From NCBI RefSeq assembly GCF_006345805.1, contig NC_043018.1, positions 10,292,001 to 10,356,000 on the forward strand: DNA of 64,000 nucleotides. The letters run 5' to 3'. Numbering within the stretch: the first letter of the stretch is position 1; each line of letters opens with the position of its first letter. Below, piece after piece: positions 3,633-64,000 of the stretch. A model generated the notes under the pieces. The model saw only the letters and a list, made by a program, of their open reading frames with translations, searched no databases and was not told where the DNA came from. The stretch is from Octopus sinensis. Lineage: Eukaryota. Both the position numbers and the translations under genes were made by a program.

Positions 3633-4087
3633 TGCTTTAAATTCTATAATAGAAATATAACGATAGTTAACATGGATGTTTAGAACAGATATCAAAATTC
3701 GGTCTGAAAGTAACCACAGAGACAGTAACCATCGCTCTACCTTTTTTAACTTATACATTTTCTTCAAAGTTACTTCCGTCCGAAAAAACAACAGAATTAC
3801 AACAAACAACCAATATTTGATCTTAGAAAACCTGTTTCGAATGGAAGTTGTTGCTTTCTGGAAGAAACTTTTAATCTGAATAAATTCTTTTCTTCTCTTC
3901 CTATTTTACCCATTCTTCGTAATCCCTAATCCCCCTTTGGTTTTTTTTATTTTAGTTTTTCCCCCAAATAGTATCAATATTGAGTGGACCATTCCATTTT
4001 TGTCCAAGGGAGGAGGGAACGTCTGTGCCGACATCAAACACTGAACACGTTGCTATAGTAATTCTTACCACCCCATCACCTCCACTT

Positions 4088-4088
<1 letters not shown>

Positions 4089-4138
<50 letters not shown>

Positions 4139-4185
4139 CTCTCTTTCTCTATCTATCTCTCTCTCTCTATCTCTATCTATCTATC

Positions 4186-4216
<31 letters not shown>

Positions 4217-5035
4217 GTTACTTTCATTCTTTCGCTCTTTCTCTTATTCTTTTTGTCTATTTATTTATCTCTATCACTCTTTCTCTCTCTATCTCTCAAT
4301 ATATTCATCAGTCTCTCTTACTTTCTCCCTCTCTTTTTACCCCTACTACCGTCTCCTTCATTGTCTATCTCTATCACTTTCTTTTTCTCTCTCTCTGTCA
4401 GACTATTTATCTATTGATCTCCTTCCCTCTTCTTACTTTCCCCTTCCCTCTTCATTTCTCCGTCCTAATGTATTTCATTCTCTCTCTTTCTAGATAGATA
4501 GAGAGATGTATATTGCTTTTTACTCTCCTTGTCTCTCTTATCCTTTCTTATCCTCTCTCTAACTGTTCTTTTTACTCCCTCTGTCCCTCTTTCTATCTGT
4601 CCTTTTTACTCTCTCTCTCTCACTATCTGTCCTTTTTACTCCCTCTCTCCCTCTTTCTATCTGTCCTTTTTACTCCTTCTCTCCCTCTTTCTATCTGTCC
4701 TTTTTACTCCTCTCTCTATCTGTCATTTTTACTCCCTCTCTCCGTCTTTCTATCTGTTCTTTTTACTCCCTCTCTTTCCCTCTCTCTATCTGTCATTTTT
4801 ACTCCATCTCTCCGTCTTTCTATCTGTCCTTTTTACTCCCTCTCTTTCCCTCTCTCTATCTGTCATTTTTACTCCATCTCTCCGTCTTTCTATCTGTCCT
4901 TTTTACTCTCTCTCTTTCCCTCTCTCTATCTGTCCTTTATACTCTCTCTCTTTCTCTCTCTCTATCTGTCCTTTTTACTCTCTCTCTCTTTCCCTCTCTC
5001 TATCGGTTATGTTTACTCCCTCCCTCTCTCCCCCT
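4089..5035. repeat. (CT)n/(CTAT)n microsatellite grading into a ~28-35 bp polypyrimidine minisatellite
   Basis: Repeated unit tctatctgtc(c/a)tttttactcc(c)tctct from about 4560 to 5035. Confidence 0.9.
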
Positions 5036-5087
5036 CTCTTAATCACTTTCTTTCTCTCCTCCCTCCCCTTCTCGCTTTCCATCCTTA

Positions 5088-5095
5088 TGACGTCA
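5088..5095. promoter_or_regulatory. CRE palindrome TGACGTCA upstream of putative TMEM258 exon 1
   Basis: Perfect CRE motif 46 nt before the ATG. Function is inferred. Confidence 0.4.
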
Positions 5096-5140
5096 CTACC
5101 GGTCCAGGCCTTCCTTCATGTCAACCAGTTCCTCTCCAAA

Positions 5141-5143
5141 ATG
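5141..5143 (+). CDS. TMEM258: TMEM258 exon 1 coding part (ATG only)
   Basis: ccaaaATG|GTAAGT has a strong start context and donor. A phase-0 join to exon 2 gives [10 protein letters not shown], matching the MELEAMSRY-like family N-terminus. The 18.8-kb intron is inferred. Confidence 0.65.
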
Positions 5144-6305
5144 GTAAGTTTCTCTTCTTCTCTGCTCGACCTCCAATATTATTTTCCCATCGATATTTTA
5201 CATAAATTCAACTCAAACCAATTACTCCAAATATTCTAATTAATTATCAAACTTCAATTAACACCCAATCACGAATATTTCTCTCCTAATTCAACAAAAA
5301 CCTCTTCTTTTTCAGCAGTAAATTCTCCAGTTTTCCCGAAACCGCTTCAAATTGTTACACGTTGCATAAAAACACACAGACACACACACACACGCCTTCT
5401 TTCATGCATCTCTGCCTTTATAATGTCCATGATATCGATCTTGATGTTATACTACACTAACCAACGTTATTTCAAAAGATTACATGATTTTAATGTAATC
5501 GTAGACGTTCCAGAAGTGGCCATCACGATTTTTATGCAGACAGCGGCGTATCAAGCATTGAATGAATGCATCTTATAATACAATTACGGTTGTTGCTTTG
5601 CCCTCACCCTCCCCTTCATTCATCGGGTCAGCTGTGGATTAGGGAGACCCACGACCCAAAAGGCATTCCATCCATGACCGTCCTGTTTATAAGGATATGT
5701 TGCACTATATATGAATGTGGGAATCGGAAGAAATTTTCAAGGAAATAAATTGTAAAGAAGTGAAAAAGTTATGGAGCGGGGTTAAATGTTTCGAAACTCT
5801 GCCTGTGTGTGTGGTTCGAGTGAAGATTTGTGTGCTATTTCTAGCAGGTCGAGTGACCACGTAGACGCTCCGTTCTTTTACACGTATACTATTGTTGGCG
5901 AATACGCATACCTGGGTGTTTAGGGTTATGGTTACGCTGAAAACGGGTGGTGTGCATATTCTTTACCTCCGCCCTAGTGTTGTTACATAGCTCCAAGTCA
6001 GCCCCGATCGAACCGACCCATAATTTAACGTCGTTCCATCCGTGACCATTCGTTAGAGAGAGAGAGAGGGCGGATATTAAGTTAGCCAGTGTTACTATTT
6101 TTCAAGTTAGTATAAGATGTGAATTGAAAAAGATTTGGTCGCTATTTCTAGTACGTTGAATGACTGCGTTGGCCGTTTATTTGGTCCCACGTCACCTCTG
6201 GCACGACAGAGACGTTCCAGTTAATGCCCACCAAGTGTTTTATCCAAACTATATCTAAGATTAGTACATGTAATGAATCTCGTTTAACCCTAAGTCAGCC
6301 CCACG

Positions 6306-7030: not shown

Positions 7031-7440
7031 ACTCTTTACTCTTTTACTCTTTTACTTGTTTCAGTCATTTGACTGCGGCCATGCTGGAGCACCGCCTTTA
7101 GTCGAGCAAATCGACCCCAGGACTTATTCTTTGTAAGCCTAGTACTTATTCTATCGGTCTCTTTTGCCGAACCTCTAAGTGACGGGGACGTAAACACACC
7201 AGCATCGGTTGTCAAGCAATGCTAGAGGGAGAAACACAGACACACACACGCATATATATATATACATACATATATACGACAGGCTTCTTTCAGTTTCCGT
7301 CTACCAAATCCACTCACAAGGCTTTGGTTGGCCCAAGGCTACAGCAGAAGACACTTGCCCAAGATGCCACGCAGTGGGACTGAACCCGGAACCATGTGGT
7401 TGGTAAGCAAGCTACTTACCACACAGCCACTCCTGCGCCT
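7031..7440 (-). mobile_element. SINE family A, full length
   Basis: tRNA-like head aggcgcaggagtggctgtgtggtaag...ggttcagtccc, a central ccttgggcaag-type box, internal (TA)n and an aaagagt tail. Confidence 0.9.
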
Positions 7441-13474: not shown

Positions 13475-14745
13475 CATCATCATCATCGTTTAATGTCCAC
13501 TTTCCATGCTGGCATGGGTTGGACGGTTTGACTGAAGCAACGGTCACGCTCGGATGTGCTTTTAACGTTCCACTGGCACGAGTTCCAATCAGGCGGTACT
13601 GTCATCAGCCGCGTCAGCAATTTTGGTTTGATTTCTCTTGCATCAATAGGTCTCTGCAAGCAAAGTTTATTGTCCAATGAATAAGGGGTACTCATAAGTG
13701 GGGTGGTTACACCCCACATTCGAATGTGTTTTAAACATTCCACTTGCACGAGTGCCAATCATGCTGTGCTGTCATCAGCCACATCAGCGATTTTGATTTC
13801 ACTTGCCTCAATAGGTCTTCGCAAACAAAGTTTATTGTCCAATGAATGAGGGGTATTCATAAGTGGGCTGGTTACACCCACTGGCATAGGCCATGGGCTA
13901 TGGTCTCACTTGCCTTGTCAGGTCTTCTCAAGCACAGCATATCTCGAAAGGTCTCGGTCACTAGTCATTGCCTCGGTAAGGCCCAATGTTCGAAGGTCAT
14001 GCTTCACCACCTCATCCCAGGTCTTCCTGGGTTTATCTCTTCCACAGGTTCCCTCAACTTCTAGGGTCTGACACTTTTTCTCACAGCTGTCCTCATTCAT
14101 TCACAACGCATGACCATATCAGCGCAGTCATCTCTCTTGCACACCACATCTGATGCTTCTTAAATCCAACTTTTCTCTCAGAGCATTTGCACTCTGTCGT
14201 GTATGCACACTGACATTACACATCCATTGGAGCATACTGGCTTCATTCCTTGCAAGCTTACACATGTCCTCAGCAGTCATGGCCCATGTTTCACTGCCAC
14301 ATAACATGGCTGTTCGTACACATGCCTCATACAGTGTACCTTTTATTCTGAGCGAGAGGCCCTTTGTCACCAGCAGAGGTAGGAGCTTTCTGAACTTTGC
14401 CCAGGCTATTCTTATTCTAGCAGCTACACTTTCAGAGTATCCACCCCCACTACTGACTTGGTTTCCTAGGTAATGGAAGCTATCAACTATTTGTAGTTTT
14501 TCTCCCTGGAATATGACAGAAGCTGTTCTCTGCACATTTTCAGTGTTTACAGCATCTAAGCATCTGCCACAGACAAAAACTATCTTCCCAGTTAGCCTCC
14601 CTTTGATATTGCTGCACCTCTTATGCATCCATAACTTACACTGGGTACATCTTATGGAGTTTCTACCTATGCCTTTTCTACAGATGCTGCTGATATTGAC
14701 CTTTCTGACCTTGCAGTTTTCAGCTCTACTATTTCTAATTCCATG
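13475..14745 (-). mobile_element. RTE LINE 3' fragment (C-terminal ORF plus partial 3'UTR)
   Basis: HKRCSNIKGRLTGKIVFVCGRC...YEACVRTAMLCGSETW...GRDKPRKTWDEVVKHDLR, homologous to 50200-51030. Confidence 0.9.
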
Positions 14746-17457: not shown

Positions 17458-17743
17458 ATATTGTTATATTTCGGAATGGTCATATTGCCAGTTTAGCCAA
17501 TAAAAACACACGCACTATATATTTGGTGTTATTTTGCTTCAGTGATATTTATTTTTTACATTAATCTTAATCTTATTTCGGCCAAAGAGTGTCACAGGAG
17601 TGTGACGAAAGAACTTTGGCCGAAATAAGATTAAGATTAATGTAAAAAATAAATATCACTGAAGCAAAATAACACCAAATATATAGTGCGTGTGTTTTTA
17701 TTGGCTAAACTGGCAAAATGACCATTCCGAAATATAACAATAT
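17458..17743. repeat. 130-bp near-perfect inverted repeat with 26-nt spacer
   Basis: Arms 17458-17587 and 17614-17743, with one mismatch seen. Confidence 0.95.
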
Positions 17744-18299: not shown

Positions 18300-19092
18300 G
18301 GTTCAGAGGTAAAAAAATGTGTTAGGATTAATGGTTCAACATGATGGGGTGACCGGAAGAAAGAAGCTGAGTGGAAGGGAGATAACAACGGTGACCCGGC
18401 TGAACTAGGGTCTGCAAGCACGTTTGTGTATGAGTGAATGGGAGTGAGCACATGTGAATGTTTGTGTGGGCAAGCTTAAAATTATGTGGACCCGCGTGTG
18501 CGTGGGTATGGGAGCATGTGTGTATGTGCATATGAACATGTGTGTATGTGTGTGAAGCTTTCCTTCTAGTGTTTGTATGAGCTTTTGATAGTTTCTTGTG
18601 TTAGAGACAAGGATCCATTCAGGTTTTTATAACATGCCTTGTGTCTCCAATTTTTGATATCTTGGCATCTGAAGCAGCTGGAGATACAATAATTTGACCG
18701 AAAGAACTGGCTATTACAAGCAAAAATGTTTGAATTGCATAATAGTGGGTTTTCTCAAATTTATATATATTATATATTTATATTGTGAAATTTGATTTAA
18801 TACTAAATTGAATTTTTCCCTTTAAGTTTGGAGTTATACTCCCTAATATTATTATTATTATATATATATGTGTGTGTGTGTGTGTTGGCATTAGGAAGGG
18901 CATACAGCTGTAGAAACACTGCCAAATCAGACTGGAGCCTGGTGCAGCCTACATGGCTTCCAGACCCTGGTCAAACCGTCCAACCCATGGAAAATGGACG
19001 TTAAATGATGATGTGTGTATATATATATATATGTGTGTGTGTATGTATGTATATATATATATGTATGTATGTGTGTGTGTGTATATATATAT

Positions 19093-39578: not shown

Positions 39579-39732
39579 CGATGGGCTTCTTTCAGTTTCC
39601 GTCTACCAAATCCACTCACAAGGCTTTGGTCGGCCTGAGGCTATAGTAGAAGACACTTGTCCAAGGTGCCACGCAGTGGGACTGAACCCAGACTCATGTG
39701 GTTGGTAAGCAAGCTACTTACCACGCAGCCAC
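39345..39732 (-). mobile_element. SINE family A
   Basis: Colinear with family A. Confidence 0.85.
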
Positions 39733-42457: not shown

Positions 42458-42868
42458 CTTACTTTTTTTTTTACTTGTTTCAGTCATGTGACTGTGGCCA
42501 TGCTGGAGCACCGCCTTTTAGTCGAGCAAATCAACCCCAGGACTTATTCTTTGTAAGCCTAGTACTTATTCTATCAGTCTCTTTTGCCGAAATGCTAAGT
42601 TACGGGGACGTAAACACACCAGCATCGGTTGTTGAGCGATGTTGGGGGGACAAACGCAGACACACAAACATATACACACACATACATATATATACATATA
42701 TACGACGGGCTTCTTTCAGTTTCCGTCTACCAAATCCACTCACAAGGCATTGGTCGACCTGAGGCTATAGTAGAAGACACTTGCCCAAGGTGCCACGCAG
42801 TGGGACTGAACCTGGAACCATGTGGTTGGTAAACAAGCTACTTACCACACAGCCACTCCTACGCCTAC
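42458..42868 (-). mobile_element. SINE family A, full length
   Basis: Colinear with family A. Confidence 0.9.
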
Positions 42869-47798: not shown

Positions 47799-47963
47799 GG
47801 TGCAGGAGTGACTGTGTGGTAAGTAGCTTGCTTACCAACCACATTGTTCAGGGTTCAGTCCCACTGCGTGGCACCTTGGGCAAGTGTCTTCTACTATAGC
47901 CTTGGTCTGACCAAAGCCTTGTGAGTGGATTTGGTAGAGGGAAACTGAAAGAAGCCTGTCATA

Positions 47964-48595: not shown

Positions 48596-51500
48596 AACAT
48601 ACCAGCCAAATTGACTACATCCTTACAAGGCAAAGGGAGAGATGGCTGCTTATAAATGCCAAAACCTTCCCAGGTGAAGAATGTACCCCACAACATAGAC
48701 TGGTAGTTTAGTGACTTTAGGATCAGGACTAGGAGGACAACCAGAAGACGACAAATATGGAGAAGAAGGATCTGGAAGCTTAAAGATCCTGCAAATGGAC
48801 AGAGATTTAGGGACATATTACTTGAAGCCTCTGACGAAGTAGAAGGGGATAGAGCATCACAGGGGGTAGAAGACAGCTGGACGTTTCTAAGGGACAACCT
48901 GCTGAGAGCCACTGACCAGATCTGTGGCTGGTGCAAAGTCCCCTCTCGACCTAGAATAACGTGGTGGTGGAACAATATTGTAGACAGGGCTATTAGAGAA
49001 AAGAGACAGGCTTGGAAGGTCTGGAAAAATGGGGGTAGCAGGGGATTGTATCAGACTGCCAAAAGAGAAGCTAGGAGACAGGTTTATTTAGCCAGAGGGG
49101 AAGCAGATAAGAAAAAATTTGCCAATGTTCTGCGCCGTGAGGACCAAAGACTGGAGGTGTTTCGTGTTGCAAGACAGTGTGTGAGAGAGAATCGTGATGT
49201 GGTAGGAGAGAAGTGTGTTCGCATGGAAGATGGTTCACTTGCGCTAAATGAGGATGCAAAGAGAGAGGTTTGGAGATGCCACTATGAAAGGTTGCTGAAT
49301 GAAGAAAATGAATGGGATAAAGAGAGTCTGCCGAATGTTGACCCAACAGAGGGACCAGCTATCCGAGTTGATAGTTCCATGGTAGCTAAGGCAATTAGAA
49401 GCATGAAGACAGGGAAAGCCCCAGGCCCATCAGGAATCACTGCTGAGATGCTCAAAATGTCTGGTAGTGTCGGCTATAGCCTAGTCACCCGTATAGTTAA
49501 TCAGGTGATACACAAAGGGGTCATACCCAATGACTGGTGTAGCAGTATAATAGTCAACTGCTACAAAGGTAAAGGTGATGCCCTAGATACAAATAACTAC
49601 AGAGGTATCAAGCTGTTGGACCAGGTGATGAAGGTTACGGAGAGGGTCATAGCCCAACTAATTAGAGAGAGAGTTAGTTTAGATGAGATGCAGTTTGGGT
49701 TTGTGCCAGGGAAAAGTACTACTGATGCTATATTCCTGGTAAGGCAGCTGCAGGAGAAATACCTAGCCAAAGATAAGCCCCTGTACCTGGCTTTTGTTGA
49801 CATGGAGAAAGCCTTTGACAGGGTCCCCCGATCCCTTATCTGGTGGGCAATGAGGAAACTAGGGATAGATGAATGGTTAGTGAGAGCTGTGCAAGCCATG
49901 TACAGGGACGCCGCTAGTAGGGTGAGGGTTGGAAATGTGTACAGTGAAGAATTCGGGTAGAGGTAGGGGTCCACCAAGGCTCAGTACTCAGCCCCCTCCA
50001 TTTATCTTAGTCCTCCAGGCAATAACGGAGGAATTCAAGACAGGATGCCCTTGGGAGCTCCTCTATGCTGATGACCTTGCTCTAATTGCTGAGTCGCTAT
50101 CAGAACTGGAGGAGAAGTTTCAGGTGTGGAAACAAGGATTAGAATCGAAGGGCCTCAGAGTCAATCTAGCTAAAACCAAAGTCGTAATCAGTAGGAAGGT
50201 AGACAAATCACAAACACCTTCAGGTAGATGGCCCTGCTCGATCTGTAGAAAAGGTGTAGTAGTAGAAACTCTATAAGATGCACCAAGTGTAAGCTATGGA
50301 CACATAAGAGATGCAGCAATGTCAAAGGAAGGCTAACTAGGAAGATGGTTTTTGTATGTGGCAGATGCTCAGGAACAATAAACACTGAAAATGCTCTGAG
50401 ACCAACTTCCGTCACTTTCCAGGGAGAAAAACTAGAAATAGTTGATAGTTTCCGTTACCTAGGTGACCAAGTCAGCAGCGGGGGCGGGTGTGCTGAAAGT
50501 GTAACTGCTAGAGTAAGAATAGCTTGGGCAATGTTCAGAGAGCTCTTACCTCTACTGGGACAAAAGGCCTCTCGCACAGAGTGAAAGGCAGACTGTATGA
50601 TGCATGTGTACGAACAGCCATGCTACATGGCAGTGAAACATGGGCCATGACTGCTGAGGATATGCGTAAGCTCGCTAGAAATGAAGCCAGTATGCTCCGA
50701 TGGATGTGTAATGCGGTACTCACACTCGGCAGAGTGTAAGTACCTGAGAGAAAAGCTGGACCTAAGAAGCATCAGTTGTGGTGTGCAAGAGAGACGTTTG
50801 CGCTGGTATGGTCATGTGGCGAGAATGGATGAAGATAGTTGTGTGAAAAAGTGCCACACCCTAGCGGTTGAGGGAACCTGTGGAAGAGGCAGACCCAGGA
50901 AAACCTGGGACGAGGTGGTGAAGCACGACCTCCGAACTTTAGGTCTCACTGAGGAAATGACTAGAGACCGAGACCTCTGGAAGTGTGCTGTGCGCGGAGA
51001 AGACCCGGCAGGACAAGTGAGTCCATAATCCCGTGGCTTCTACATGGGATGGAGCCAGCCTACGTATGCATACTTCCCTTCTTGGGACACAAAACTCTAC
51101 TTGTGAAGACGTGATGAGGCAAGTGAGGATCAGAATCGAAATCGATCAATGGAATTGCGGATGTGCTACCAGTGCCAGTGGCATGTCAAAACTCTGCTTG
51201 TGAAGACCCGTTGAGGCAAGTGACGATCAGAATCGAAATCGATCAATGGAAATCGATCATCAATGGAAATTGCAGATGTGTTACCAGTGCCGGTGGCATG
51301 TAAGAGAACTTTCCGTTTCGCGACCGTTGCCAGCACCGCCCCGTTTCGTGTCCGTTGCCAGCCTCGCCTGGCCCTCGTGCCGGTGGCACATAAAAAGCAC
51401 CATCCGTTCGTGGCCGTTTGCCAGCTCTGTCTGGCACCAGTGCGGGTGGCACGTAAAAAGCACCCACTACACTCACGGAGTGGTTGGCGTTAGGAAGGGC

Positions 51501-52713: not shown

Positions 52714-52844
52714 AATGGCATGTTGTATGAAACTTAAAACTCCTGATTTAATCAACTAAAGAGTGAAAAAACCTTGTTGGAAAAGCACCAATTCTGAAAG
52801 TGGTCCATAGTAGGGGTAGTTGCCTCCCTTGTTTCCCCTTCAGC

Positions 52845-56520
<3,676 letters not shown>

Positions 56521-56525
56521 AGTAT

Positions 56526-56573
56526 CCAATAATGGCGCCATTGATTTCAAGTAATCTTTACAAGTTTATAAAA
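56526..56573 (+). promoter_or_regulatory. CCAAT and TATAAAA boxes upstream of the secreted-peptide gene
   Basis: CCAAT at 56526-56530 and TATAAAA at 56567-56573, 73 nt before the ATG. The TSS is not known. Confidence 0.4.
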
Positions 56574-56645
56574 ACCTTTGTGAGTCTTTAATTGAAGAAA
56601 CGTCAGAACACAGAGAATAATTTCAATAGAAGGAACTGGTGAATT

Positions 56646-56730
56646 ATGGCGGAACACAAATTGCTTGTTTCTTTGATTCTGACCATTCTGAGTTTGGATT
56701 TTGTCATCTTGGTGGAAAGTCAGGCAGCAT
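56646..56730 (+). CDS. Signal-peptide exon of an unrecognised secreted Cys-rich protein
   Basis: MAEHKLLVSLILTILSLDFVILVESQAA plus 1 nt, then |GTAAGA (phase 1). It has a hydrophobic core and small-residue cleavage region. Confidence 0.75.
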
Positions 56731-57125
56731 GTAAGATAACAGAATTCTTATTTTGCCATTCTTTGATATTTGTATTTGTGTGTGTGTGTGTGTGCGTGTG
56801 TGTGTGTGTGTGTGGTGTGTGTGTGTGTGTGTGTTACAAGGTTCCTAATAAGAAGTCGTGTGTTGAAACAGATATGGTTGCATTTTGGGACGGTCATTTC
56901 ATTTATTTTCTTTTGCCAAATAATTACACACACTGTATATTTTTTCTTCACTCATTTATTACTGTTCTTATTCTACACAAACACACACGTATGACTGGCT
57001 CCTCCTGTGCCGGTGGTACGTAAAAGTCACCCACAACACTCTCGGAGTGTCATGGTTAACATATAACAATACAAATCATAAACTGTAACATTCAGTCTGC
57101 TCTACTGAATCCATACACACATATA

Positions 57126-57545
57126 GGTGCAGGAGTGGCTGTGTGGTAAGTAACTTGCTAACCAACCACATGGTTCCAGGTTCAGTCCCACTGCGTGGCA
57201 TCTTGGACAAGTGTCTTCTGCTATAGCCCCGGGCCGACCAATGCCTTGTGAGTGGATTTGGTAGACAGAAACTGGAAGAAGCCTGTCGTATATATGTATA
57301 TATATATATATATAGTGTGTGTATGTGTTTGTGTGTCTGTGTTTGTCCCCCTAGCATGCTTGACAACCGATGCTGGTGTGTTTAAGTCCCCGTCACTTAG
57401 CGGTTCGGCAAAAGAGACCGATACAATAAGTACTGGGCTTACAAAGAATAAGTCCCGGGGTTGATTTGCTCGACTAAAGGCGGTGCTCCAGCATGGCCAC
57501 AGTCAAATGACTAAAACAAGGAAAAGAGTAAAGAGAAAAGAGATA
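57126..57545 (+). mobile_element. SINE family A
   Basis: Colinear with family A. Confidence 0.9.
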
Positions 57546-57784
57546 TAAAATATCTAAGAGTATATTTTTTGCCTCTGAAGATATGATGCTCCTGTCATAT
57601 AAATATAAATTTAATATTTACTTAATATTTCTTTAGTATTGATTGAAACAGCTGTAAGGAATGATGATTAATTTGCTGTTAATTATAAACAATTATTAAC
57701 TTCCCAATCTCCATTTTCTTTTTCTTCTTTTATATGAATATAAACTATATTTTTTTTTTACATATACACCTATTATTTTAAGGA

Positions 57785-58015
57785 AATTAATTCCCTAAAA
57801 ATACTAGGTATATATATATATACACACACACACATGCAAACATATAGACAAACAGATAGATAGATAAATACATACGTACATATATACATGTGTGTATGTA
57901 TATATATATATGTATACATATATGTATACATGTATGTGTGTATAAATTAATTCCCTAAAAATACTAGGTATATATACATATATATATATATATCTTGCAC
58001 AACAAATATTTAAAC

Positions 58016-58056
<41 letters not shown>

Positions 58057-58155
58057 TGCAAACATATAGACAAACAGATAGATAGATAAATACATACATA
58101 TATACATGTGTGTATGTATATATATATAAGTATACATGTATGTGTGTATAAATGA
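57785..58155. repeat. Local tandem duplication of a microsatellite-rich unit
   Basis: aaattaattccctaaaaatactagg occurs twice. The second unit carries atcttgcacaacaaatatttaaacgta, also seen at about 17773-17800. Confidence 0.7.
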
Positions 58156-59093
58156 GTGTGTGTGTGTATGTGTGTATCTGTATCATCATCATCATCTTCA
58201 TCATTCCTCACCATTCCTTGCTTTATTCAACGTTAGAAATTATTATCCATTATTAAATCTCTGATAATTTTAGTTTACAATCTGAAAAAAAAAATCTTAT
58301 CAAATTCTTCTACACACATTTCCTTCATATTTTTTTCTCTTTCTGTTTGGTTTCCATCAAATTCTTCAACATCCACTTCATCTTCTGCTCACCATTAATT
58401 CAATTTAACTCAAACATCAATTAATATTTTTCTCTGATATTTGTTATTCAATCAAATCACAAACGTTTGCATTGTGTATTTCACAGAACCTATTCTTGCT
58501 TTTCAAGTCTTAACCATTTCTTTAAAGAATTCCTTCTTGTCAATGGAAGTCAATGAATTCATAACAATAAACAGATGAGATATGTCTATCCAAGAGGTTC
58601 TCATGTTATTCGTTGTCGCTACTTCATAACATTATTCTCATTTTTACCTTTTACTTGTTTCTCTCCTTCGGCAGCGGCCATGTTGGGGCACTGCCTTGAT
58701 GATGGGATTTTAGTTGAATAAATTGACCCCAGTGATTTTTTTTTTGTTAAATCCTCGCATCTATTCTTATCAGTGTCTCATGCCAGACTGCTAAGTTAGA
58801 AGAACATAAATAAACCAACACTGGTTGTCAAGTGGTGGAGGGGAGAAACACAAACACAAAAACTCCCCACCACAGACACACAAAAATACATCATCATCAT
58901 CATCATCATCATTATCATCACCATCATTCAAGATCCTTCTTCCATGCTGGCATGGGTTGGACGGTTTGACAGGAGCTGGTCAGGCAGAAGACTGCCCCAG
59001 ACTTCTGTGTCTGTTTTGGTAGGGTTTTTAATGGCTGGATACCCTTACAAACACCAGCCACCCCGCAGAGTGGGGTATATATATATATATATT

Positions 59094-59512
59094 ACTCTTT
59101 TACTTGTTTCAGTCATTTCACTGCAGCCATGCTGGAGCACTGCTTAATAGTTGAGCAAATCGCCCCCAGAGCTTATTTTTTGTAAGCCTAATACATATTC
59201 TATTGGTATCTTTTGGCGAACTGCTAAGTTACGGGGACGTAAACACACCAGCATTGGTTGTCAAGCAATGCTGGGGGGACAAACAGACACACAAACATAT
59301 ACACACACACATAGGCAGATATATATATATATATATTTATATACATATACAACGGGCTTCTTCCAGTTTCCGTCTACCAAATCCACTCACAAGGCTTTGG
59401 TCGGCCCGAGGCTATAGTAGAAGACACTTGCCCAAGGTGCCACGCAATGGGAGTGAACCCGGGACCATGTGGTTGGTTAGCAAGCTACTTACCACACAGC
59501 CACTCCAGTGCC
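59094..59512 (-). mobile_element. SINE family A
   Basis: Colinear with family A. Confidence 0.9.
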
Positions 59513-59514
59513 TA

Positions 59515-60592
59515 TATCATCATCATCATCATCATCGTTTAACGTCCGCTTTCCATGCTAGCATGGGTTGGACGGTTCAACTGGGGTCTGGGAAGCCAGA
59601 AGGCTGCACCAGGCCCAGTCTGATCTGGCAGTGTTTCTACAGCTGGATGCCCTTCCTACCGCCAACCACTCCATGAGTGTAGTGGGTGCATTTTACGTGC
59701 CACCGGCACAGGTGCCAGACGAGGCTGGCAAACGGCCATGATCAGATGGTGCTTTTTACGTGCCACTGGCATGGGGACCAGACAAAGCTGGCAACGGCCA
59801 CAGTCGGATGGTGCTTTTTACATGCCACCGGCACGGAGGCCAGTCGGGTGGCGCTGGCTATGGCCACGTTCAGATGGTTCTCTTATGTGCCACCGGCACT
59901 GGTATCACAGCTACAAATTCCATTGATGTTGACAGATTACGATTTTGATTTTGATTTTCACTTGCCTCAACAGGTCTTCACAAGTGGAGTTTTGTGTCCC
60001 AAGAAGGAAAGTAATGCATAAGTGGGCTGGCTACATCCCAGGTATAGGCCACGGGATTATGGCCTCACTTGTCCTGCCGGGTCTTCTCACGCACAGCATA
60101 CTTCTAAAGGTCTCGGTCTCTAGTCATTTCCTCGGTGAGACCTAAAGTTCGAAGGTCGTGCTTCACCACCTCGTCCCAGGTTTTCCTGGGTCTACCTCTT
60201 CCACAGGTTTCCTCAACCGCTAGGGTATAGCACTTTTACACACAACTATCTTCAGCCATTCTCGTCACATGACCATACCAGCGCAAACGTCTCTCTTGCA
60301 CACCACAACTGATGCTTCTTAGGTCAAACTTTTCTCTCAAGGTATTTACACTCTGTCGAGTATGAACACTGACATTACACATCCATCAGAGCATACTGGC
60401 TTCATTTCTTGCAAGCGTATGCATATCCTCAGCAGTCACGGCCCATGTTTCACTACCATGTAGCATGGCTGTACGTACACATGCATCATACAGTCTGCCT
60501 TTTACTCTGAGCGAGAGGCCTTTTGTCACCAGCAGAGGTAAGAGCTCTCTGAACTTTGCCCAGGCTATTCTTACTCTAGCAGTTACACTTTC
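59515..60592 (-). mobile_element. RTE LINE 3' fragment (ORF end plus full 3'UTR)
   Basis: Matches 50500-51634. Confidence 0.9.
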
Positions 60593-60904
60593 GATATATA
60601 TATTAAAATTTATAGGACAAAAAGATGGAATGAACAGGCTTTAATTGAAATCACAACAATTGTTTCTGTACATTAATAACAGCTGTTGCTGAGTTTTCCA
60701 TATCATAAATATTATTTTATTATATAAATATGATCCAGCAAACAGTAGCGTATGGTTGCCAGTAACTGTAGAGGAGCTTTGATATGTACATTATAAGGTT
60801 ATTACCTACATGATATTAAATTACATACATATACACATACAAACACACATACATACACAGATACACACATACATACATACATACACACATACACACATAC
60901 ATAC

Positions 60905-60935
<31 letters not shown>

Positions 60936-60962
60936 TACTACATACATACAACACATACACAT

Positions 60963-60999
<37 letters not shown>

Positions 61000-61947
61000 T
61001 ACATACATACATACATACATACATACTGTTGATTTCATGTTGAGAGTGTGAAAGAAACTGGTGCAGATTCTCCAAATCCAATCTATGAGTGGCACAATAA
61101 AGATCTGTAAGATATTCCAAAATTTCTCCAGCCGAGATTCTTTAGGTGAATAGATGCACACACCAACTCAACCACATATTTATAAACGCTGGGGTCTCTC
61201 TTAACTGAAGTAGTCTTGTCGCTTTGTTAGCGACCGGCTTGAGCCCTCTCAGAAACTGAAATAAAACTCAAAGAAAATCATACATTCATACACACACACA
61301 CCTCTCTGCAGGGATGATGCATTGGCAATATCAAGAGAGGCAAACAGCCATACACTAGATAGGCTTAGAAAGGGCCTCACCGGCACCATGAATTCCTTTG
61401 GACTGAAGGCTATGATGGTGGATTTCCTTATGTGACCCTGGACTTGGAGTCTGGTGCCTATAGAGGACCAGTCACCATATTTCATTCCATATTGACTACC
61501 TCTGACGAGTGTAGGGTTATCTAATCGGATTGTTACCTAACCCTCTGTTGTACCCCAAGTATGAAACTGATTGGTAAGATCAGCCATGATGGTAATATAA
61601 TACTGTACACTACGGATAATATATATACATACACACACACACATGAGCTTTTTTCAGTTTTCATCAACCACGTCCACTCATAAAGCTTTGATTGGCTCAG
61701 GGCTATCATAGAAGGCACTTATCCAAGATACTACACAGTGGGACTGGAATCAAGACCACATTGTTGAAAGGACTATTGTTATTACCTGTCTTAGCGAAGG
61801 TTGAGGTATTGTTTTCAGTTGTGTTTGTTTGTTTGTTCGTGGACAAGATATCTCAAGAACTGCTGAATGGATTCAGATGAAACATCATCATCATCATCAA
61901 CGTCATCATCAGTGCTAATATTTTTAATATTTTACTCTTTCTTTCAG

Positions 61948-62055
61948 GTAAGGAATGCTTCAATGGTAAAAATGATTGTTCAAATGTGTACCCATGTGGT
62001 AACCATGCTCTCTGCTTCACCGACGGAACATTATACTGCATTGAACCCATCATAG
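61948..62055 (+). CDS. Six-cysteine module exon of the secreted protein
   Basis: tttactctttctttcag| (T)GT=C KECFNGKNDCSNVYPCGNHALCFTDGTLYCIEPII g|GTAAGT. It is 108 nt, phase 1-1 and open in the frame set by exon 1. Confidence 0.8.
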   Translation, partial: VRNASMVKMIVQMCTHVVTMLSASPTEHYTALNPS

Positions 62056-62103
62056 GTAAGTAGACTCTTCCAATCTAATAGAGTGGGCTGTTCCATTTTA
62101 TAT

Positions 62104-62330
62104 ATACAAGGGAGTACTGAAAAGTCCCTGGATTTGGATAAACGAATATATAGGATGATCAGTTGATTATGATTTTATCCAACATATTCCCCTCTCAGAT
62201 TCATACACTTATTTATTGTGGTGGTCCTTCAGTTTTTCTAAGTCCTAAAAAGGAACTTGGAAGGTCGCGTCTCCAACTAGACCTTTCATGATACCCTCGA
62301 AGCAGGAATTCTTCAGCACCCCCCCCCTCA
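62104..62330. mobile_element. Mariner-like terminal fragment
   Basis: agggagtactgaaaagtccctgg..., resembling mariner TIR ends. Assigned by recognition only. Confidence 0.5.
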
Positions 62331-62427
62331 TACATGCAGAACTTTAGAAAACAGTAGCAAATGGAGTGGGGAGGCGACAGGTAGGTCAGATAAATTAAAT
62401 TAAGGTTGATCATTGAGATATGTACAT

Positions 62428-62990
62428 AGGTGCAGGTGTGGCTGCGTGACAAGAAGTTTGCTTCTCAACAACAGGGTTCTAGGTTCAGTCCCACTGTGTG
62501 GCACCTTGAGCAAATGTCTTCTACTGTAGCCTTTGGCTGACCAAAGCCTTGTGAGTGGACTTGCTAGATGGAAACTAAAGGAAGCCTGTTGCATATGTAT
62601 TCTTTTGTCTCTTTTACTTGTTTCAGTGATTTGACTGTGGCCATGCTGGAGCAAAGCGTTTTAGTCGAACAAATCGACACCAGGGTTTATTTTTTTGTAA
62701 GCCTAGTTCTTATTCCGTTGGGCTCTTTTGCCGAACCACTAAGTTACGGGGACGTAAACACACCAACATCAGTTGTTAAGCAATGGTGAGAGAAGAAACA
62801 CAGACATGCAAACATATATATATATGACAGGCTTCTTTCAGTTTCCATTTACCAGATCTACTCACAAGGCTTTGGTCAGCCCGAGGCTATAGTAGAAGAC
62901 ACTTGCCCAAGGTGCCACGCAGTGGGACTGAACCTGGAGCTATGTGGTTGGATAAGGAAGCTACTTACCACACACCCACACCTGCACCTT
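62428..62990. mobile_element. Inverted pair of family A SINEs (+ 5' half 62428-62600; - near-full 62605-62990)
   Basis: Heads at both outer ends face inward. Confidence 0.8.
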
Positions 62991-63029
62991 ATATATATAT
63001 ATATAAACGAGTGTGACCATTGACAGAGT

Positions 63030-63505
63030 GGCTAACCGGGTTCCATGCCAGTGGCACTTAAAAGGCACCATTTGAGTGTGATCGTTACCAGCATCGCCTT
63101 ACTGGCACTTGAGCCCCGTGCTAGTAGGGTGCTAAGAGCACCATCCGAGCATGATCGTTGCCAGAGCAGCTAACTGGCCTACATGCTGGTGGCACATAAA
63201 AGGCAACATTCGAGCATGATCGTTACCAGTGTCGCCTTACTGGCACCTGTGCTGGTGGCATGTATAAAAAGATTTGAGCGAGGTCATTGCCAGTACCACC
63301 TGACTGGCCTGTGCCAGTGGCACATAAAAGCACACACTACACTCTCGGAGTGGTTGGCATTAGGAAGGGCATCCAGCTGTAGAAACTCTGCCAGATCTAG
63401 ATTGGAGTCTGGTGCAGCCATCTGGTTCGCCAGCCCTCAGTCAAATTGTTCAACCCATGCTAGCATGGAAAGCGGACGTTAAACGATGATGATGATGATG
63501 ATGAT
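63030..63505 (+). mobile_element. RTE LINE 3'UTR fragment (variant units)
   Basis: gtgcc..ggcac units and a (GAT)n tail. Confidence 0.8.
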
Positions 63506-63574
63506 ATATATATATACATATATGTATATATATATATATATATGTATTTATGTGTGTGTGCCTTTGTGTGTATC

Positions 63575-63785
63575 TTTGTATCCCACCATCACTAGACAAC
63601 CGGTGTTGGTGTGTTTACATCCTTATAACTTAGCAGTTAGAGGGGTGTAAGCAAAAGAGACCAATAGAATACATACCAGGCTTTAAAAATAGGTACTGGG
63701 GCCAATTCTTCAAGGCAGTGCTCCAGCATGGTCACACTCTAATGACTGAGACAACTAATAGATAAAAGGTTAAAGATATACATAC
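63575..63785 (+). mobile_element. SINE family A 3' part (diverged)
   Basis: Matches the family A 3' half. Confidence 0.7.
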
Positions 63786-64000
63786 ACACAAAAAAATCGT
63801 CTTCAGATGTGGATTTAATTTTTTCATATGTGTCTACAAAAGTGGAAAAATTGATGCCTGTTGATCTGATGATCCAGCCTTCTGTATCTGCATTGGCTTG
63901 TAAAATATACAATAGTACTATGCAGTTTATAGCTTATATGTAAAATAATGCATTATACATTAAAATAAAGTATTTTTACATGATATCAACTGGTAAAATA

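Follow-up and report, generated by a model that had tools for sequence, protein, structure and literature searches.

An Octopus-restricted single-copy gene, LOC115223160, predicted to encode a small secreted protein with two six-cysteine modules

The window analysed here is a 64,000-nt stretch of the Octopus sinensis genome, in which two short exons lying between positions 56646 and 62055 of the forward strand had been predicted to encode a secreted cysteine-rich peptide. We interpret this feature as the promoter, the signal-peptide exon and the first cysteine-module exon of LOC115223160, an Octopus-restricted, single-copy gene of four exons whose three introns are all in phase 1; we give this reading a probability of roughly 0.6. 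That the exons belong to a real gene for a secreted cysteine-rich protein is very probable. The 64-aa spliced product corresponds to residues 1–64 of XP_029649447.1, with 100% identity over 100% of the query, in a search of 5.8 billion protein clusters. XP_029649447.1 is the 103-aa "uncharacterized protein" encoded by LOC115223160 of O. sinensis. The other members of its cluster are XP_014775150.1 from O. bimaculoides (LOC106872590) and two O. vulgaris products, CAI9739107 (103 aa) and CAI9739106 (113 aa). The database names given to the gene are all merely "uncharacterized" or "hypothetical". The window is 100% identical to O. sinensis chromosome CM016880.1 across the 17,355-nt overlap, and lies at about 10,292,001–10,356,000. 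The gene had been described as unannotated-looking, a description that does not hold: it already has a RefSeq entry in O. sinensis, and its orthologues in O. bimaculoides and O. vulgaris are annotated too. It is a catalogued yet unstudied gene rather than a missed one, and will not surprise specialists.

The CCAAT and TATA motifs noted in the original prediction are present upstream of the first exon. The CCAAT box (56526–56530, + strand), read from the sequence about 120 nt 5′ of the ATG, is invariant between O. sinensis and O. bimaculoides; its motif and conservation suggest that it may act as a promoter element. The TATA box TATAAAAA (56567–56574, + strand), 72 nt 5′ of the ATG, is kept in O. 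bimaculoides, and transcription probably starts at about 56595–56600. Coding exon 1 (56646–56730, + strand, 85 nt) begins with the ATG at 56646, two codons downstream of an in-frame TGA. It encodes the putative signal peptide MAEHKLLVSLILTILSLDFVILVESQA, followed by A28 and the first base of Cys29, and its translation is 100% identical to residues 1–28 of XP_029649447.1. The exon ends in phase 1 at 56730, where the sequence reads GCA GCA T|gtaaga. Intron 1 (56731–61947, + strand, 5217 nt, phase 1, GT..AG) carries a (TG)n microsatellite about 50 nt past the donor and a (CAT)n run just before the acceptor, which at 61947/61948 reads tattttactctttctttcag| (tctttctttcag| in a second reading). Coding exon 2 (61948–62055, + strand, 108 nt, phase 1-1) encodes the N-terminal module C29-KE-C-FNGKND-C-SNVYP-C-GNHAL-C-FTDGTLY-C-IEPII, with cysteine spacing 2, 6, 5, 5, 7. 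Its translation is identical to residues 29–64 of the RefSeq protein and its 3′ end reads ATC ATA G|gtaagt. Joining the two exons gives MAEHKLLVSLILTILSLDFVILVESQAA-CKECFNGKNDCSNVYPCGNHALCFTDGTLYCIEPII, the first Cys codon being split T|GT across the junction. The exons, consensus splice sites, phases, split codon, symmetric 108-nt exon and peptide of the predicted two-exon gene were all confirmed base for base.

The remainder of the gene lies beyond the window, and by tblastn the last 39 residues of the protein are not encoded in it. Intron 2 (phase 1, 2900 nt in total) occupies positions 62056–64000 (+ strand) with its first 1945 nt and continues past the window end. Exons 3 and 4 are found about 0.95 and 2.5 kb past that end. 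Exon 3 (window-equivalent 64956–65072, + strand, 117 nt, phase 1-1) has the borders ttccttccag|AT GTT ... CCA TCA T|gtaagt and encodes a second six-cysteine module, so that a search for further module exons downstream, which had been proposed as a check, does reveal one. The framework C-x2-C-x6-C-x5-C-x5-C-x7-C first described for the peptide is correct in its spacing, but covers only half of a 12-cysteine protein. Exon 4 (window-equivalent 66493, + strand), preceded by ttttgcag|, contributes only the AA of a split stop codon T|AA, and an AATAAA follows 12 nt past the stop. The four exons joined reproduce the RefSeq protein exactly, and the splice sites are consensus. In the fetched O. sinensis locus L001, whose numbering is offset from that of the window by 46645, the last intron interrupts the stop codon at 18427/19848 (65072/66493 in window terms); the same arrangement is found in the O. 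bimaculoides locus L002 at 14380/15814.

The encoded protein consists of a putative signal peptide, module 1 (exon 2, six Cys) and module 2 (exon 3, C-x8-C-x3-C-x11-C-x4-CC), with one six-Cys module per symmetric exon. The n-, h- and c-regions of the leader were judged by inspection and hydropathy. They divide as MAEHK / LLVSLILTILSLDFVILV / ESQA|A, with K5, an 18-residue hydrophobic core of mean Kyte-Doolittle value 2.76 and S-Q-A at positions -3 to -1. The leader is conserved in the three Octopus species and shows the n-, h- and c-region features of a cleavable signal peptide. It would be cleaved after Ala27 and the protein secreted. The mature protein of about 76 residues has a mass of 8.07 kDa, a pI of 4.45 (4.05–4.7 across the three species), 12 Cys, 4 K+R against 8 D+E, and one conserved N-T-T sequon (N89). 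Once secreted, six disulfides would lock it into a compact, protease-resistant, stable extracellular protein. No dibasic site (KR, RR, KK or RK) is present in the protein. With these properties, neither a neuropeptide precursor nor an antimicrobial peptide of the cationic kind is favoured. The leader features, as inspected, and the 12 invariant cysteines bear out the initial description of a small disulfide-rich protein with a signal peptide.

The gene is conserved among Octopus species. O. bimaculoides has the same four exons, with the same lengths, phases, splice sites and split stop codon, and the three coding exons recur in O. vulgaris with matching phases and splice sites. All 12 cysteines are invariant across the three species. 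Intron 1 interrupts the same codon position in each, with a length of 5217 nt in O. sinensis, 3550 nt in O. bimaculoides and about 7.7 kb in O. vulgaris. Between O. sinensis and O. bimaculoides, the promoter and exon 1 are 98% identical over 256 nt that include both boxes, compared to 74–90% for nearby introns; the 160 nt 5′ of the ATG are 94% identical, as against 79% for the next 300 nt. Substitutions between these two species are distributed unequally over the coding sequence. The signal peptide shows one non-synonymous and no synonymous change (dN/dS not defined), module 1 shows 11 non-synonymous and 2 synonymous changes (dN/dS about 1.3, on small counts), and module 2 shows 3 of each (dN/dS 0.31), which points to purifying selection on module 2. 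The sequences thus suggest that the leader is near-invariant, that module 1 changes fast and that module 2 is constrained, which is the usual pattern for secreted effector genes. In gene organisation only, conotoxin-type genes offer a parallel, with a very conserved signal-peptide exon and a cysteine scaffold that is kept while the non-Cys residues of one module change fast. The octopus gene differs from them in being single-copy, in lacking a propeptide and processing sites, and in having 12 Cys in two modules.

The O. vulgaris locus (L038) was reached through the 113-aa isoform, since the exact look-up of the 103-aa product returned no record. In the 113-aa isoform, an internal donor of exon 3 after ..CKA (L038 about 13917) is joined to a terminal exon lying 3.7 kb downstream (17649–17708), so that the CC pair is lost; this transcript is probably minor or non-productive. 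Its existence suggests that the annotation is transcript-based.

Outside the genus, word-indexed searches of the 5.8 billion clusters returned the Octopus cluster only. Among 1.84 billion representatives scanned exhaustively with HMMER, the Octopus cluster and two bacterial repeat proteins were the only matches. The suggestion that the gene is lineage-specific is thereby upheld. A bacterial protein with Ig-like repeats and a DGSYYCAVPDGETS motif (P0005) was judged to be a repeat-summed chance match and was rejected as a relative. Pfam gave no match even at E 10 to the 64-aa product, to the whole precursor, to the mature protein or to module 2, and NCBIfam gave none either. Two sub-threshold Pfam matches of the O. 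bimaculoides orthologue, SEHBP (E 0.013) and UNC80_N (E 0.18), were dismissed. In the PDB, sequence searches started from the protein, from module 1 and from a profile of module 2 yielded chance matches only (collagen IV NC1, E 0.53; R-spondin, E 1.2). The framework of the first module, which the original prediction did not recognise, indeed matches no Pfam domain or PDB sequence. This module appears to be an orphan fold. The protein represents a new, undescribed family inside a familiar class, that of lineage-restricted secreted disulfide-rich proteins.

The module had been suggested to be duplicable, but no sign of its duplication was seen. The two modules share no similarity by blastp, and internal duplication was rejected. 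Neither a paralogue nor a further module was found in the window, the 12 kb downstream, 10-kb flanks in two species or the protein databases; apart from the gene itself, tblastn and a scan for Cys-rich open reading frames (ORFs) gave only "CVCVCV" noise from microsatellites. Module 1 is reminiscent of EGF-like modules, being a six-Cys unit of about 36 residues on a symmetric phase 1-1 exon, and by eye its ..P-C-x2-x-A-x-C-x3-G-x3-C.. stretch locally resembles the EGF central hairpin. However, it has no C-x-C, its spacing (2, 6, 5, 5, 7) is different and it lacks a Pfam EGF match at E 10. In contrast to EGF mosaic proteins, the octopus protein ends after one further module.

The second module, encoded outside the window, carries the defensin-like feature of the protein. 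Its cysteine array conforms to the beta-defensin-type pattern C-xn-C-x3-4-C-x9-13-C-x4-6-CC. An AlphaFold2 (AF2) model of module 2 alone has a pLDDT of 74.3 and three beta-strands. Comparison of this model with the PDB using Foldseek gave four matches. The best is helianthamide (4x0n_B), with a TM score of 0.53 and an rmsd of 2.6 Å over 33 columns (E 4.9). The others are two DR5 Cys-rich domains and the N-terminal beta-defensin domain of AvBD11 ([1-40]). In addition, intron 2 is in phase 1 and lies 2 codons 5′ of Cys67. Beta-defensin and big-defensin genes have a phase-1 intron just 5′ of the Cys-rich domain (PMC7203481). The octopus gene shares this trait of the lineage, which is weak evidence because phase-1 introns are common. 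From the cysteine array and the low-significance fold match we tentatively propose, at slightly less than even odds, that module 2 adopts a three-stranded beta-defensin-type fold.

Helianthamide, from a sea anemone, is one of the closest known systems, the comparison being with module 2 only. Its array, C-x9-C-x3-C-x12-C-x4-CC (PDB chain 4x0n_B), is near that of module 2. Like the octopus protein it is acidic-rich and does not belong to the cationic defensins, and both have a similar x-K-x-P-x tail after the CC pair. The sequence similarity is not significant, with only 3 non-Cys identities between proteins of different phyla, and the octopus protein has an additional N-terminal six-Cys module. 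The C1–C2 loop of helianthamide carries Y-I-Y-H, which we take to be its amylase active-site-binding motif; the octopus loop reads AVPDVETA, and the protein is not of the helianthamide type in this respect. Helianthamide is a beta-defensin-fold protein that acts by binding tightly to an enzyme, as an alpha-amylase inhibitor (PMC6835510). Magnificamide was grouped with it here as a beta-defensin-fold alpha-amylase inhibitor of sea anemones.

By analogy with the beta-defensin-fold inhibitors and toxins of sea anemones, whose mode of action is target binding, the octopus protein would bind a specific extracellular protein target (an enzyme, receptor or channel) rather than disrupt membranes. This proposal follows from its acidic character and its lack of sequence similarity to cationic defensins. 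We put the odds at even that it is a non-lytic, target-binding effector or ligand. In a rough division of the possible functions, an inhibitor or toxin-like effector would receive the largest share, though well short of half, followed by a signalling or reproductive ligand, then by a structural or other role, then by an antimicrobial one; very little is left for an artefact.

A number of results weigh against the reading developed above. The Foldseek matches of module 2 are all non-significant (E 4.9–9.6), and there is a weak furin-like or TNFR-type alternative for this module. The AF2 model of the whole protein is poor (pLDDT 62.7), and Foldseek with this model gave nothing usable. Pfam defensin models (Defensin_beta and Defensin_big, PF14862) were silent at E 10. 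A profile HMM built from 15 big-defensin C-domains scored module 2 at -6.6 bits, below 995 of 1000 shuffles with fixed cysteines, and hhalign of module 2 against big defensin gave a probability of 0.3%. At the level of the gene, exon 2 (88.9% identity) is no better conserved than the flanking intron (88%), and its dN/dS of about 1.3 rests on small counts. The case for its being coding consequently depends on the preserved frame, splice sites and cysteines. Exon 2 shows 12 differences, and with 13 random substitutions it would keep all its Cys and gain no stop with a probability of about 0.07. Support for the splicing of the exons consists of the three gene annotations, and the 15-billion-protein collection searched contained no RNA-derived (Logan) copy of the protein. 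The full texts of the papers searched mention neither gene identifier, the supplements searched lack the O. sinensis identifier, and the peptide strings were absent both from the full text of the papers and from the posterior-salivary-gland database supplement searched. Finally, the alignment with a bacterial repeat described below assigns Cys67 to module 1, at odds with the defensin-type parse of module 2.

This repeat was encountered in P0006, a bacterial secreted protease that was the only non-octopus match of interest in the exhaustive search (E 8.9e-4). P0006 has trypsin-like and PPC domains and, at its C-terminus, four Cys repeats (residues about 595–816). Its alignment with octopus residues 30–70 shows 39–46% identity and takes in a (D/E)P-I/L-I/V-DVC-x-V stretch, in which octopus EPIIDVCAV faces DPIVDVCVV. 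Scanning GTDB genomes located the repeat in 35 bacterial and archaeal loci from metagenome-assembled genomes (L003–L037), with about 100 copies, in Myxococcota, Acidobacteriota, Desulfobacterota, Gammaproteobacteria and others. The bacterial repeat is about 47 aa long and tandemly arranged, often C-terminal to secreted proteases, with the consensus ..C-x2-C-GP-C-xxG-x-GDCD-xD-xEC-xxGL-xC-..VGA-xFGF-xP-x-VDVC. It is not covered by any Pfam or NCBIfam model and seems to constitute a separate, undescribed family of domains.

Module 1 together with Cys67 of exon 3 may accordingly be read as a metazoan copy of this repeat, through ancestry, transfer or convergence, in which case the domain boundary is not the exon boundary. 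Six of six cysteines align (C-x2-C-x6-C-x5-C-x5-C-x15/16-C) with a single 1-residue gap, octopus C59 being extra, and the two share in addition a G-x-x-D-C element and a Y-x-x-(D/E)-P-x-(I/V)-D-V-C ending. An HMM of the four P0006 repeats gives the octopus sequence 22.9 bits, a score reached by none of 5000 Cys-fixed shuffles. An independent 100-copy HMM gives 15.3 bits, reached by 30 of 20,000 such shuffles, and hhalign gives a probability of 78% (P 1.8e-5 over 42 columns). Against this, P0006 was singled out as the top match of an exhaustive search, which makes the follow-up statistics post hoc, and its E-value sums four near-identical repeats; the bacterial link is therefore treated as a lead, not a result. 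The single-domain scores of 15–23 bits are not database-significant, and Cys-rich profiles attract one another. Large bacterial proteins carry the repeat in tandem; octopus has one copy, which is interrupted by an intron and contains an additional Cys. Of the characteristic G-x-G-D-C-D and G-L-x-C motifs, GDCD is reduced to D-C and G-L is absent. The alignment also spans intron 2, in conflict with the 6+6 parse into exon modules. We regard this explanation as unlikely, if less so than those that follow. A bolder version of it is a long shot: the segment Cys29–Cys67 would be the first animal representative of the bacterial repeat, joined in an octopus ancestor by phase-1 exon shuffling to a beta-defensin-fold module, to give a genus-specific acidic two-module secreted effector that has no parallel elsewhere.

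The proposed target binding leaves room for a different kind of target. The protein could be a secreted signalling molecule, pheromone or reproductive ligand (of egg, sperm, mucus or gland) for a receptor of the same species, and not directed at prey or microbes. A small, acidic, disulfide-rich, genus-restricted and fast-changing character is typical of molluscan water-borne protein pheromones and reproductive proteins. The octopus protein shares these traits and is potentially glycosylated, and its fast non-synonymous change is concentrated in one module. The gene is single-copy, with no tandem family of the kind formed by toxins or antimicrobial peptides, and the missing peptide strings in the posterior-salivary-gland supplement agree with such a role. 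However, the protein resembles none of the known families of pheromones or hormones. Moreover, this proposal overlaps our own, as both invoke a target binder and differ only in whose target is bound. As a separate explanation it seems quite unlikely.

An alternative that retains the defensin comparison is a defensin-type antimicrobial peptide, a relative of big defensins and beta-defensins that kills by binding membranes or cell-wall precursors. Big defensins and the beta-defensins of vertebrates share with the octopus protein a two-part precursor after the signal peptide, a six-Cys array that has x3 and x4 loops and a terminal CC, and the phase-1 intron that immediately precedes the Cys-rich C-domain; one of the four fold matches is, moreover, an avian beta-defensin domain. 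Unannotated big defensin genes have been reported in Octopus genomes (PMC7203481), but the present gene is annotated. The big-defensin array itself is C-x6-C-x3-C-x13-C-x4-CC. Near-invariant big-defensin residues are all absent from the octopus protein, and the Pfam, HMM and hhalign comparisons given above are uniformly negative. The N-domain of big defensins is hydrophobic and Cys-free, whereas the octopus N-module has six Cys and no similarity to it, and the dibasic propeptide site is missing. Membership of the big-defensin family was rejected on these grounds. Membership of the cationic defensins was likewise rejected, as such peptides are cationic and the octopus protein, with its excess of D+E over K+R and its pI of 4.45, is acidic. 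We consider an antimicrobial peptide of this type very doubtful.

Lastly, EGF-type mosaic proteins typically have Cys-rich exons of phase 1-1, and it is highly improbable that the exons represent a spurious or decaying gene model, or that exon 2 is part of a larger mosaic: for all the intron-like conservation and dN/dS of exon 2 and the missing RNA-derived copies, the same coding sequence (CDS) occurs in three separately deposited annotations, the frame, splice sites, 12 Cys, split stop and promoter are conserved across species, module 2 has a low dN/dS, no EGF or other Pfam match appears, and a CDS that stops at the exon 3/4 junction makes a larger protein impossible.

The surroundings of the gene are rich in repeats. 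Long (TG)n, (CA)n and (TA)n microsatellites and the (CAT)n run account for 52750–54320, 56060–56510, 56778–56835 and 61883–61911; one microsatellite ends about 135 nt 5′ of the ATG and one begins about 50 nt inside intron 1. In O. bimaculoides the (CAT)n run, which lies just before the exon-2 acceptor, has grown into (CCT)n(CAT)n. Intron 2 measures 2.9 kb in O. sinensis (L001 15411–18310) against 0.5 kb in O. bimaculoides (L002 13744–14263), and the exon-proximal parts of the introns remain alignable between species. Repeat insertions are presumed to account for these several-fold differences in intron size. Elsewhere in the window, a retroelement reverse-transcriptase fragment is found at 49046–49960 (+ strand; Pfam RVT_1, E 9e-13). 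Downstream pieces related to the retroelement, which carry a Cys/His-rich motif, lie at 50249–50368 (+ strand) and 14128–14649 (- strand), two copies in opposite orientation. A short interspersed repeat occurs at 7347–7412, 39649–39714 and 42773–42838 (- strand) and at 47826–47891 (+ strand); its translated tag ACLPTTWFRVQSHCVAPWASVF appears in tblastn noise, and further related copies give FYVPPAQ-type ORFs. A CT-rich, strand-skewed block of low complexity at 3980–5240 (GC skew -0.46 and AT skew -0.35 over 4001–6000) gives rise to long spurious "SLSLSL" ORFs.

Cephalopod genomes contain many lineage-restricted secreted proteins, which are candidates for innovations in venom, skin, suckers, immunity and reproduction. 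LOC115223160 is a compact case, with a single copy, four exons, two exon-sized modules with predicted disulfides and a conserved promoter. Its 8-kDa scaffold, predicted to be stable, may find use as a binder or inhibitor. If module 2 does adopt the beta-defensin fold, the gene would represent an acidic, non-canonical use of this scaffold in a mollusc, fused to a new module, and would bear on the spread of defensin-type domains by exon shuffling.

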